Of a stretch of DNA of 64,000 bases, positions 2,549-49,029 are shown in pieces. The notes below the pieces were generated by a model that was not told the DNA's origin, did no database searches, and saw nothing but the letters and a program-made list of their open reading frames with translations. The stretch spans positions 1,445,992 to 1,509,991 of the forward strand of contig JAHDYR010000005.1 of NCBI GenBank assembly GCA_019828565.1, written 5' to 3'. A program made the translations under genes and the position numbers. How positions within the stretch are numbered: position 1 is the first letter of the stretch; each line of letters opens with the position of its first letter. Source of the stretch: Carpediemonas membranifera BICM. Its lineage: Eukaryota; Protista; Fornicata.

Positions 2549-2949
2549 AGCTCTTTTAGACGGTGCAGTTTAGTGTACAACGCGATGTGCTATTGAAGGG
2601 TCACACGTCGTCTCATTGTCTTCTATTCCACATTAAATTCGCTAGGCTACAGGGCACCCTCGCCCGACTCGAAGAAGCTCTCGCAGGTGTAGGCTCTCCG
2701 GCCTTCTTCCAGCAGGAGTTGGCCGACGTTCACGCCATCCTCGACATGGTCAACCCTGAGATCCTCGCGTGTCTCCCCTCGCTGTTCTGGGCGGCACACA
2801 TGGGTGAGAACGACGGGCTCCCAGTCTCCCAGGCTGCCCCACGCATTCTCTCTTGCGTCTGGGCAATTGCTGACGGAGTGGAGACGTTGAGTGGCCTCAT
2901 CAGCCACTTCAACGGGGAGTACTCGATGTCGCTCCGCCAGCCTCGCCTC

Positions 2950-3127
2950 GTGCCGTGGTTCTCAGTGGCGCGCAACAGTTCCTGATGCTCTGAATGTTGA
3001 TCATCGGGACAAGAGTGCTGCAGAGAACATCCTGTGGCGTTCTCTTGCCACGGAAGATGAGCTCAGTGGCTCTCCGTTCATTGATCCCACGTCTTCAAAC
3101 ATCATTCCAGCATCATCAATTGGCTAA
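2950..3127 (+). pseudogene. Fanzor/TnpB C-terminal remnant (RuvC-III region)
   Basis: DALNVDHRDKSAAENILWRSLATEDELSGSPF aligns with DILLNLSHRDKSTSENILWCSFDATSDQIEQSPF of the 15290-16245 Fanzor. An upstream 'VPWF' in a shifted frame matches 'APWH'. No Zn finger or RuvC-I/II remain. Confidence 0.75.
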
Positions 3128-3260
3128 CCGCCAACATTCGTCTACGGACGGATGATGTTGTGCAGTTTGGCACTTTGATCGTTCCTTTCAGGCCCTGTCT
3201 TGGAGGTTCGAACAATGTGTTTATACTGCGCAACACGCGACACACCACACAGTCGGTCAC
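3128..3260 (+). ncRNA. Candidate degenerate omegaRNA region downstream of the Fanzor remnant
   Basis: 3200-3236 TTGGAGGTTCGAACAATGTGTTTATACTGCGCAACAC resembles TTGGACTCAACAATTCTAATCCTGCGCAGCAC found downstream of the other Fanzor in the same relative orientation. Boundaries are uncertain. Confidence 0.35.
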
Positions 3261-15049: not shown

Positions 15050-15289
15050 GCACTTGACTATTCTGAAGTTCACCGTCGTAAGGCTCATCACACTTGCCCT
15101 AGCACTCTGCCCTAGTAAGCCCAGAAGCAAGGGACATGACCATGGTGTGCTGCGCAGGATTAGAATTGTTGAGTCCAAAACACACAGTGATCCGAGCAGC
15201 ATCAGGATCGCAGTGTGGTTCATCATACTCTATCAATCGTGCGCTGCATATCACGCGCGCTGCAGCGCGTGCTTGCTCAACTTAGCAAG
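15050..15289 (-). ncRNA. Candidate Fanzor omegaRNA (structured 3' flank)
   Basis: Directly after the Fanzor stop codon are consecutive hairpins (15272-15289, 15252-15271, 15181-15217), then a 35-nt motif (15145-15179) shared with other loci in the window. The position matches where TnpB/Fanzor guide RNAs are encoded. Ends are unknown. Confidence 0.5.
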
Positions 15290-16245
15290 TTAATGATAGC
15301 AAGGAAGAGCACCTCTCTGGGAGTCGTAGTGGAAAGGAGATTGCTCTATCTGATCTGAAGTTGCATCGAAGGAGCACCAAAGGATGTTCTCGCTGGTGCT
15401 CTTATCTCGGTGAGAGAGATTGAGAAGTATGTCTCTCTGCTCGGGATGCCGACGAAGCCGTTCAACGTGCCATGGAGCTCCCTCGCACGCGGGATTCTGG
15501 CAGAGCATGGTGCGGTGTGTGTGCACCACACGTCTGAAGTGTGCTTTGCAGTATGGGCACACGATGGAAGTGCGGAATTCCGAAACCATGTGCGCACTCA
15601 CGACGACGTTGTGCCGGAGCATGATGCCAGGAAGTGCTCGAGCAAAGTGGCGGTACGGAGCACACGAGGGAGTGCCGGCGGAACCGAACAGTGCAGCCCC
15701 ATACGCGACTTTGAGGTGAATGGGCTCCGGGGGCGCCCGCCGAGATCATCCAGGAGTTGACGTCCAGCCCGGGCGAAGTGCTTCAGGCGCATACAGTGAT
15801 TGGCAAAAGTCGCACGGCGGAAACACTTTCTCGTCCCCTCGTTGATGATCTGAACGATGTTCTCATGGACAAACCTAATCGACTGTTTGAGAGCCTCTAG
15901 ACTTGTCGTTTTGAACGATGCTGCGCTCATATTCACGCGGAAAGAGGGGGTGGCAGTGTAGCCACACTTAGCGAGTACGCCAGATACACTCTGCCCGTCT
16001 GGGCGGCGGATCGTGTAGCCGCCCAGCGACCGAGCACCAGGGTCGAAGCCCATGAGAGCTTGAATGTGCGGGGCAGGAGTAGCTTCGGCGTCATCCTGAC
16101 CGAGCCGAGCCCGCTTGTTATTGCTACCCTTTTTGTACGTGGGCCGGTCAGCCACCCGACCGCCACTGTATTTCTCGCGACCCACCCAAACCGTCACAGC
16201 AACGGAGACCCCGTCTGTCTTCACAGAGAGCACTGCATCGATCAT
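15290..16245 (-). mobile_element. Fanzor (eukaryotic TnpB-like RNA-guided RuvC nuclease), 5'-truncated, one frameshift at G-run 15729-15733
   Basis: KTDGVSVAV; RuvC-I GFDPG (D codon 16042-16044). After adding one base: KVAYGAALFG; RuvC-II VSEFRTS (E codon 15578-15580) directly before the Zn finger CPYC...CQNPAC; RuvC-III HRDKSTSENI (D codon 15404-15406). The repaired ORF is 318 aa. Confidence 0.88.
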
Positions 16246-16463
16246 TTCTTTTCAGGGTTCATCAGCTGGCAGCATCCCTCAAAACACAAGAAACCAGCAT
16301 CATACAGCACAAAGCGTCTTTACTACTAGCTACAACCGCTTTCCACCACTAGTGTCTCTCACAACAGACGAAGATGACGAAGACGACGACGTCATGAGCT
16401 TCAGACGCCGGCAATGGACGACAGATGAGCGCGTAACAGACGAGCACAGACGCGAAAGAAGAC

Positions 16464-16693
16464 AGCAGCGTTCGACACAGACGATGGACGACAGACGACG
16501 CATCTTTTCGTGCAGACCGACGACTGAAAGCACGACAGACCGATTGTACAGACAATGGCTGAAGAGGGTGAGTGGAGGTAGTGTGCCGCGCAGGATTAGA
16601 ATACTTGAGTCTAAATCTCTGGAGTTCATCCCAGGGGGGTCGACAGCTTAAGTCACCTTTACATGAATCCTCCACATAAACCCTCTAAATACC
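16464..16693. repeat. Dispersed ~230 bp repeat, copy 1 (putative non-autonomous Fanzor-associated element)
   Basis: Near-identical to 48727-48963. Contains 16581-16615, 31/35 identical to the motif in the Fanzor 3' flank. Confidence 0.9.
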
Positions 16694-16722
16694 ACACATG
16701 GCTAGTCCTTAAAATGCACAGT

Positions 16723-18081
16723 ATGACCTCCGCCGTTGAGAGCAATGGAGAGGTGGAAAAGCCCGCATGGAAGTTCTTCGTGAAGTCCTGGGGCTGTTCA
16801 TCCAATTTCTCCGACGGAGAGGTCATGGCCGGTGTTCTTAAGAGCGCAGGCTTTGAACTCGTGCCCGATTGGAGCGAAGCGGACGTTGTCGTTGCCAATA
16901 GCTGCACCGTGGTTAATCCCAGCGAGCTTCACTTCTGGACGTTTGTCAAACAATGCGTGGAGTCCAACAAGAGCCTTGTTCTTGCCGGCTGCGTCCTTCA
17001 GGCTGAGAACAGGCCGCTCGACGCCGCCCTGCCCATCTGGCTCCGCCCATTCAAGGCCCAGATAGCGGTACTTGGCCCTCGCCAACTCACCACTGTCGCT
17101 GCCGCCGCCGCCCAGCTCCTGACCGGTGAATGCGGGACGATGCCAATCAACCTGGGCGATGACGGCATACCGCAAGCCCCGCCAAAGATCAGGGGCAACT
17201 GTAGGGTCGAGATTGTGCCAATATGTTATGGATGTCGCGGTGCATGCACATATTGCAAGACTCGGTTTGCTAGAGGAGCGCTCAAGTCCAAACCGATCGC
17301 CCAAATCGTCGAGGAGGCGAAGCAGGCGTATCCGTTCACTGAGCTATGGCTGACTGGCCAGGACACCAGTGCCTACGGCCTCGACATCGACGCCTCTGTA
17401 CCTCAGCTCATCGACGCGCTGATCTCAGCCCTGCCTGATCATATCAAGATCCGTATCGGCATGGCGAATCCAGATCATATCTTGCCCGACTTGGGTAATT
17501 GGACAAGGATGTTTATGAACCACCCCCAGCTCTACCGCTTCCTCCATTTGCCGGTACAAAGTGGTAGCAATGCCGTGCTGAAGCGAATGAACAGAAAGTA
17601 CACAGCAGAACAGTTCGAGCAGCTTGTGGACGGTCTGCGAGCGGCTGTCCCAGATATTACCATCATGACGGATGTGATAGCCGGCTTTCCGGGCGAGACC
17701 GACGAGGATTGGGTTCAGACGCTGGCATTGCTGACTAAGCTTCAACTTCCATTCGTCAACATCACCCGGTTCTACTCTAGGCCCCACACTCCTGCTGCTA
17801 AGATGAAGCAGGTCGATTCAAAGGTCACGAAGCGGCGCACGAAAGAGTTGACAGGCTTGGACACGAGAAAGGCTACACTAGACGCGCTAGTAGGCCATAA
17901 TATGCCTGTGGTCGTCACTGACCGAGCGTACAAGGGCAGTTTGATGGTTGGCCACACCCCATGCTATATCCAGGTGCTTCTCCCGCTTGATGAGGCGCTG
18001 CTCGAAGCGGGGGCGACAGTTCAGGCGGAGATCGTGAGCGCGGGGGCATGGAGCGTCGAGGGGCGTGTTATCAAGCAGTAA
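16723..18081 (+). CDS. CDKAL1: tRNA threonylcarbamoyladenosine methylthiotransferase (CDKAL1/e-MtaB), radical SAM
   Basis: UPF0004 domain (WGCSSNFSDGEVM, NSCTV, AGCV), CRGACTYC radical-SAM motif, FLHLPVQSGS, DVIAGFPGET and a C-terminal TRAM domain. The ORF-track start at 16663 lies inside the repeat, so 16714 or 16723 is more likely. Confidence 0.9.
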   Translation: MTSAVESNGEVEKPAWKFFVKSWGCSSNFSDGEVMAGVLKSAGFELVPDWSEADVVVANSCTVVNPSELHFWTFVKQCVESNKSLVLAGCVLQAENRPLDAALPIWLRPFKAQIAVLGPRQLTTVAAAAAQLLTGECGTMPINLGDDGIPQAPPKIRGNCRVEIVPICYGCRGACTYCKTRFARGALKSKPIAQIVEEAKQAYPFTELWLTGQDTSAYGLDIDASVPQLIDALISALPDHIKIRIGMANPDHILPDLGNWTRMFMNHPQLYRFLHLPVQSGSNAVLKRMNRKYTAEQFEQLVDGLRAAVPDITIMTDVIAGFPGETDEDWVQTLALLTKLQLPFVNITRFYSRPHTPAAKMKQVDSKVTKRRTKELTGLDTRKATLDALVGHNMPVVVTDRAYKGSLMVGHTPCYIQVLLPLDEALLEAGATVQAEIVSAGAWSVEGRVIKQ

Positions 18082-48726: not shown

Positions 48727-48963
48727 AGCAGCGTTCGACCCAGACAATGGACGACAGCCGACGCATCTTTTCGTGCAGACCGACGACTGAAAGCACGAAA
48801 GCCCGATTGTACAGACAATGGCTGAAGAGGGTGAGTGGAGGTAGTGTGCCGCGCAGGATTAGAATACTTGAGTCTAAATCTCTGGAGTTCATCCCAGGGG
48901 GGTCGACAGCTTAAGTCACCTTTACATGAATCCTCCGCATAAACCCATAAACCTCTAAATACC
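48727..48963. repeat. Dispersed ~230 bp repeat, copy 2
   Basis: Same orientation and only a few substitutions/indels relative to 16464-16693. Shared motif at 48844-48878. Confidence 0.9.
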
Positions 48964-49029
48964 CACAAGCCGCTTGACATAAACTGCATACTAGGAGACC
49001 TTCACAGCCCACCGGCTTTGAATTCAACC

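Follow-up and report, generated by a model that had tools for sequence, protein, structure and literature searches.

A dead Fanzor1-like gene in Carpediemonas membranifera and its probable retrotransposon-like carrier

Reading frames and motifs at the locus

The locus lies in a window of 64,000 nt (the whole stretch of DNA analyzed) from the genome of Carpediemonas membranifera, an anaerobic flagellate, as had been correctly surmised from the sequence. It is flanked by genes of the radical-SAM and Fe-ADH types, and Tandem Repeats Finder found no tandem array near it. Two minus-strand reading frames encode the protein: the translation of the frame starting at position 16245 contains TDGVS and FDPG, and the second frame contains HLKVAYGAALFG, SEFRTS, CPYC, CQNPAC, HRD, and ENI. 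The first piece (15734–16232, minus strand), corresponding to residues 329 to about 497 of the 642-aa paralogue P0078, carries TDGV (16218–16207) and the RuvC-I Asp of DPG (16044–16042), and the second (15290–15728, minus strand) carries VAYG (15709–15698), the RuvC-II Glu (15580–15578), the zinc finger (15559–15485), the RuvC-III Asp (15406–15404), and the stop codon (15292–15290). Both pieces shared 94% identity with P0078, over residues 329–500 and 497–642, respectively. Between them, the frame is shifted at a run of five G (15729–15733, plus strand), where most paralogues have six bases, and joining the two ORFs gives 318 codons. Our analysis reproduced both this run and the 318-codon product reported in the first-pass annotation, together with all of its motifs (TDGV, DPG, VAYG, the Glu by the zinc finger, and RD).

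The start codon of the Fanzor family is at 16238–16236 and not at the ATG at 16245, and it adjoins the junction of a 979-nt deletion with a 2-nt microhomology (start codon and junction, 16232–16238, minus strand). The ATG at 16245 is a codon of the 5′ untranslated region (UTR; 16239–16581, minus strand) that was originally out of frame and was put in frame by the deletion. An in-frame stop upstream of 16245 had been read as the sign of a missing N-terminus; this stop sits in the UTR, and the truncation was caused by the internal deletion.

Copies of the gene and state of the window copy

The internal deletion removed residues 3–328 of the 642-aa gene, and the REC and WED lobe is consequently absent from the window copy. 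The identical deletion was also found in L002 and L004 (three loci including the window), and at least 10 further deletions were found among the family copies. The C. membranifera genome contains at least 40 DNA copies with 92–98% identity; among 79 protein matches in the genome, one was stop-free over its full length (P0078, 642 aa), so the proposed search for full-length copies elsewhere in the genome did recover an open frame. The natural intact gene is KAG9394109.1. Two Fanzor copies, P0001 and P0032, are publicly misannotated as cytosine deaminase and Smc, respectively.

Five G were present at the frameshift position in 6 of 29 copies, which requires four origins on the tree, and this state was shared within two sister pairs, so some of the five-G cases are real. 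In the short-read contigs, six G accounted for 83–100% of the depth at the run; however, these contigs lacked the allele of the window copy at several private positions and represent other copies, and they are therefore no test of the G5 at 15729–15733. Because the REC/WED half is missing either way, the window copy is dead whichever G count is correct.

The locus had been described as either a truncated copy or a minimal variant. The first description holds, given the 979-nt deletion and the existence of full-length copies, and the second does not: the window copy is a dead relic and not a minimal Fanzor. A functioning minimal enzyme of 318 aa would be consistent with the presence of the same deletion at three loci and with its persistence as an open 319-aa ORF in L002 (P0080). 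However, such a product would lack residues 3–328, that is, the predicted REC and most of the WED, and the other deletions (at least 10, of random size) have spread as well, so that spreading requires no protein. We therefore rejected this reading, whose probability is close to nil.

Probable assignment of the protein to Fanzor1

Fanzors are defined by DPG and a Glu six residues ahead of CxxC (PMC10711439). In the Carpediemonas protein, DPG is followed 152 residues on by the RuvC-II Glu, which stands six residues before CPYC, fitting this definition. The Asp, Glu, and Asp residues and the cysteines (CxxC, CxxxxC, HRD) are conserved in four lineages at about 50–75% identity, namely families 1–3 of the C. 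membranifera genome and a 646-aa metagenome protein, and in a profile alignment the second cysteine pair is spaced as in PpFz1 and GtFz1. When the four-lineage profile was searched against the PDB, PpFz1 and GtFz1 ranked first with collinear motifs, at E-values (0.29 and 1) that were not significant. The neighbors in a language-model atlas (score 0.97) were eukaryotic and giant-virus TNB clusters, the nearest being Fanzor1. The AlphaFold models were poor (pLDDT 41 and 38). A fold search with one low-pLDDT model placed SpuFz1, Cas12f, and GtFz1 within the PDB top five without significance, and the second matched two Sylvanvirus proteins (E-values of 6.6e−5 and 2.3e−4), the latter of which is named Cas12f1-like TNB. 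A wide fold search with the low-confidence model of the intact paralogue was empty or uninformative.

Pfam, NCBIfam, and single-sequence PDB searches gave no significant match, and scans of viral and metagenome contigs were empty. Apart from the Carpediemonas copies themselves, protein searches returned a single metagenome relative, one small fragment, and a transcript of Copromyxa. The last of these, a protein from the Copromyxa protea transcriptome (P0068), falls in a 90% cluster with Carpediemonas Fanzor fragments and is probably contamination.

The protein shares with Fanzor1 (PpFz1, GtFz1, SpuFz1) the TDGV, DPG, Glu-six-zinc finger, CxxC then CxxxxC, and RD motifs, a length of about 640 aa, and a structured 3′ RNA extending to the element end. 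In contrast to Fanzor1, it is too diverged for a significant sequence match and has a longer stretch between the zinc finger and RuvC-III, and its elements have no conserved TAM at the insertion site and no DNA transposase partner that we could find. Taken together, several individually weak lines make it very likely that this is a Fanzor1-like protein. The spacing of the motifs and four database comparisons that rank Fanzor1 first, each of them weak, thus uphold the original Fanzor1 call; on profile and fold matching to TnpB/Fanzor, Fanzor1 came top in the PDB below significance, and the two viral matches were below 1e−3. The intact 642-aa paralogue agrees with Fanzors in every sequence feature that we examined, whereas the window copy lacks REC/WED. 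Judged from its sequence, the intact form would be capable of RNA-guided cutting.

Anatomy of the element and its insertion site

The element ends and the carrier had been missed in the first-pass annotation. The window element, 1,551 nt long, is bounded by TG...CA ends and a 5-bp duplication and contains 30-nt direct repeats and a purine tract. On the Fanzor strand, the order is host motif, 5–6 free bases, 5-bp target-site duplication (TSD), 13-nt left end, fragment X, and 30-nt repeat, followed by the UTR, Fanzor, 3′ region, second 30-nt repeat, and TSD. The host target motif (16708–16717, minus strand; consensus GCASTTTATG) lies 11 nt from the element end and overlaps the start of the neighboring radical-SAM gene. 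It is followed by the left TSD copy (CCATG; 16697–16701, minus strand) and the left terminus (16684–16696, minus strand), which starts with TG and ends with TTTAGA. Fragment X (16616–16683, plus strand), comprising the last codons, stop, and 3′ UTR of a putative RLE-type non-LTR retrotransposon, sits between two TTTAGA words. The inner 30-nt repeat (16582–16611, minus strand) ends with CA, and a polypurine-tract-like purine tract (16561–16581, plus strand) abuts the TG of this repeat with its GGTAG end. The outer 30-nt repeat (15146–15175, minus strand), which also ends with CA and has a degenerate extension to 15186, forms the right terminus and is followed by the right TSD copy (15141–15145, minus strand), the putative start of a guide. 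The radical-SAM gene itself (MiaB/CDKAL1-like, 16663–18081, plus strand) starts about 20 nt from the element, and its annotated ORF runs into fragment X.

Of 31 elements, 24 had an exact 5-bp TSD. The motif lies on one side only, at an almost constant distance: the elements land 10–11 nt away, and the GCA of the motif is at −20 in 26 of 35. The motif combined with TG gave 88 matches, compared with 2 for the control, with the abundance of the motif accounting for about half of this. A PWM test located the motif in front of 13 of 89 host ORF starts and inside none of the ORFs (0); a crude test based on ORFs gave a null result for the promoter idea (12 of 26, versus 41% at random). We infer that the host target motif is probably a core promoter word. 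The TSD and the bases beside the insertion point have almost no information content.

The 30-nt repeat has 215 copies in the genome, some of them solo units with their own TSD. In family 1, the family of the window element, an X-free left unit measures 41 nt from TG to CA. The family-2 unit is 43 nt long and differs in sequence; this family has the same motif, at +11, and likewise a TSD of 5 bp. In the metagenome relative, the repeats are 34 nt long and the unit 41 nt. This relative (L051, a JGI metagenome contig) encodes an intact 646-aa protein, and its TG...CA unit extends the layout beyond the C. membranifera assembly. A long TSD as the source of the 30-nt repeats was excluded, since the same repeat sequence is present at every locus and the true TSD lies outside it. 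Chimeras of the families also occur (L039, L037). The window contains a second, complete element at 2586–3235 (plus strand), a multiply deleted family-2 Fanzor element whose TSD is CGCGA and whose motif lies 11 nt upstream.

Fragment X

Read on the strand opposite Fanzor, fragment X consists of an RLE-like ORF end, a stop, and a short UTR. It has one fixed start point and almost any end length, flanked by the two TTTAGA words, and its length varies from copy to copy. By eye, it carries an EP...R-x-x-D...IDVTV...K...Y motif of the C-terminal PD-(D/E)xK type; it shares 39% identity with ORFs of 1391–1505 aa, its ORF had no match in Pfam or the PDB, and no reverse transcriptase was seen. Target-specific RLE non-LTR retrotransposons (CRE, R2, R4, and NeSL; PMC4640811) have the same motif, stop, short 3′ UTR, and truncation ladder at a fixed site; the differences are that X occupies the end of a Fanzor element and that it has no full-length copy that we could find and no profile match. 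A second LINE subfamily sits at the same site as X.

These features raise the question of whether an RLE-type LINE builds the insertions, with one nick primed on the 3′ end of LINE RNA, the other on the 3′ end of Fanzor RNA, and the two cDNAs joined. In 27 of 29 sampled family-1 left ends (a sample partly chosen by X), LINE sequence of 28–468 nt with one fixed start was present, and one Fanzor deletion was paired with different X lengths, as such a process would predict. However, family 2 shares the motif and the 5-bp TSD and has left ends that nothing interrupts, some family-1 ends are free of X, variation in the first 7 nt is independent of the LINE subfamily, and no full-length copy of the LINE of X was seen (longest open frame, 392 aa). 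Because family 2 is mobile despite having no X, X does not drive the movement, and we consider the LINE-driven process very improbable. X may instead be a site-specific LINE inserting in place, with which tandem matches and a 17-nt duplication including four flank bases in L030 agree. Alternatively, it may be an old insertion re-trimmed by jumps of reverse transcriptase onto RNA 3′ ends, a reading that fits the uniformity of X, which is as high as that of the Fanzor copies, and the lack of any full-length LINE.

Probable link to a Gypsy retrotransposon and nature of the carrier

About 30 terminal bases of the sister family 2 are also found in the LTR of a chromodomain Gypsy element of recent origin. 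The family-2 left end had 165 matches in the genome, including 10 pairs 4551–4555 nt apart, and these pairs are the 92-nt LTRs of one Gypsy element, for which solo LTRs were also found. This element (about 4.65 kb; L036:6784–7101 and G000:C26:899089–903731) has 16 copies that are 98–100% identical across 312 nt. The 312-nt stretch contains the end of a chromodomain-like ORF (Pfam E-value of 0.006), and because the element is known from this stretch, its reverse transcriptase and integrase are presumed. Its purine tract ends in GGTAG, the same five bases as in family 1, and in all three lineages the purine tract adjoins the inner repeat on the opposite strand. By its coordinates, the Gypsy element lies immediately next to family-1 elements at two sites (C26 and C65) and next to family-2 ends at three (C11, C13, and C15). 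Genome searches found no autonomous element with a family-1 end; the direct Gypsy link is limited to family 2. A motif-like word lay near only four of the Gypsy LTR starts, at mixed offsets.

The diagnostic bases of the inner and outer repeats agreed in 5 of 22 elements, compared with 5.0 by shuffling (P = 0.61); the two repeats were identical in 3 of 22 elements, and their first 11 nt always differed. Because the inner and outer repeats are no more alike than chance, the elements do not follow a normal LTR cycle. A search by eye for a primer-binding site after the 5′ repeat found no TGG and no perfect palindrome.

Ty3 and Tf1 are promoter-targeting LTR elements, and TRIM-like elements are non-autonomous and moved by Ty3/Gypsy. 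With these, the Carpediemonas elements share TG...CA ends, a 5-bp TSD, a purine tract, solo units, a fixed distance from a promoter-like motif, and an end in common with a chromodomain Gypsy element. In contrast to TRIM-like elements, the repeats measure only 30–43 nt and do not become identical, inspection showed no primer-binding site, and the cargo is an antisense Fanzor. The carrier resembles a non-autonomous LTR element, but we do not class it as one, since its two repeats are not identical LTRs.

Another candidate is a DNA transposon that is non-autonomous and depends for its movement on an integrase-type DDE transposase (Ginger2/TDD or IS481EU-like), with gap repair generating the deletions and chimeras and Fanzor acting in restorative homing. 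The TG...CA ends and 4–5 bp TSDs described for Ginger2/TDD (PMC2836005), the independent inheritance of the two repeats, the deletions that retain both ends, and the fact that proven Fanzor carriers are all DNA transposons (PMC13565253) speak for it. Ginger2/TDD and IS481EU (PMC2836005, PMC10045372) likewise have TGT...ACA termini and 4–5 bp TSDs; however, they possess true terminal inverted repeats and a transposase, neither of which was seen in the Carpediemonas element. Its inverted repeats are only 4–5 bp, compared with at least 45 bp in Ginger2, and no transposase lay between the ends in any copy read. Moreover, the purine tract and the end shared with the Gypsy LTR are unexplained by a DNA transposon, and with a TSD and adjacent bases that are nearly free of information, the empty site could not be recognized through a fixed adjacent TAM. 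Therefore, we regard a DNA transposon as unlikely.

The better explanation, which we hold to be probable with some reservation, is that the window locus is a dead, internally deleted, non-autonomous element with a lone, divergent Fanzor1-type gene, and that Gypsy enzymes mobilize the element in trans. These enzymes would reverse transcribe an RNA of the strand opposite Fanzor, and the purine tract would define one end of the product. The integrase, attracted by the promoter-like host motif, would then insert the TG...CA product with a 5-bp duplication. The two ends are not identical and would not derive from a single LTR template; the left end would be acquired separately, and the LINE fragment within it is a passenger.

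Candidate omegaRNA and guide

The last 150 nt of the element fold better than shuffled sequences (z = −2.8). The candidate omegaRNA scaffold (15146–15289, minus strand) consists of two short hairpins and a long stem, of which the outer repeat is the 3′ arm. The same arrangement, with the stem closing at the last bases of the element, was predicted in three lineages of unrelated sequence, and an Rfam search of the candidate scaffold gave no match. The depth of short-read contigs (the read sets consisted of contigs) was high between the repeats and low across X and the flanks, which suggests transcription between the repeats. Following PMC10432273, the guide would be the TSD plus the right flank. 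Because the bases beside the insertion point are nearly free of information, an ordinary adjacent TAM cannot match the empty site.

RNA-guided integration, in which Fanzor itself chooses or cuts the insertion site with the repeat as a fixed guide, was also considered. The motif is one-sided and its distance fixed, the repeats contain a motif-like word, TTTA or TTTG precedes the repeats and resembles known TAMs, and several copies have a rearrangement inside the repeat. However, folding places the repeat in the terminal stem of the scaffold in all three lineages; the motif, a short and degenerate word, occurs commonly at host gene starts, as the ORF counts above indicate; and its polarity would place the cut on the wrong side. 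The repeat was therefore rejected as a fixed guide, and we regard guided integration as highly improbable.

Combined with the Gypsy-mediated route, these features lead to a broader proposal, to which we give slightly less than an even chance: the Carpediemonas Fanzor1 genes may be transposase-free retro-parasites, which are reverse transcribed and inserted at host promoters by a Gypsy helper that also renews one end, while the terminal repeat serves as the last stem of the omegaRNA, and each insertion writes a new guide.

Comparison with known Fanzor elements

A literature search found no published link between Fanzor and Carpediemonas. The Fanzor1 elements CRe-1, 2, and 3 of Chlamydomonas (PMC3627910) are likewise Fanzor-only, with truncated copies, a target preference, and TSDs; however, they have Helitron-type ends and TSDs of 7–19 bp, whereas the Carpediemonas elements have a fixed 5-bp TSD and TG...CA ends. 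LINEs are listed only as neighbors of Fanzors (PMC10530073). According to a 2026 review, no Fanzor-encoding retrotransposon is known, and retrotransposons, which do not excise, should gain nothing from one (PMC13565253). A Gypsy-type carrier for Fanzor has not been reported before. If several Fanzor families have indeed kept their catalytic residues intact on retro-like carriers, this would contradict that review and turn the benefit of Fanzor to the element into a testable question. Given random flanking sequence, the nuclease would need a spaced or absent TAM or would have a role beyond restoring its own empty site. C. membranifera lacks NHEJ (PMC8516963), and in such a host guided breaks would be repaired through recombination. 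KAG9394109.1, together with the defined scaffold end, is suitable for a TAM screen; the window copy is only a relic.

Rearranged copies

Several copies have structures of their own. The left and right flanks mismatch in L024 and L034 (G000:C4:650151 and C4:667016); the right flank of L024 opens with the TSD expected at other loci, which points to ectopic recombination between copies or to misassembly. In L043 (G000:C8:930999–937206), the flank and left end occur as a triple tandem with a period of about 2.08 kb ahead of a Fanzor copy. Within the repeat of L034 (500–660), about 130 nt resemble the 3′ end of a host mRNA and are bordered by a 6-nt duplication, and short telomere-like TAAGG-repeat fillers occur at some junctions (L013:914–984 and others). 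Within the window, positions 48727–48967 (minus strand) hold a family-1 left end without a right end, and its X junction is nearly the same as that of the copy at 15290–16245.
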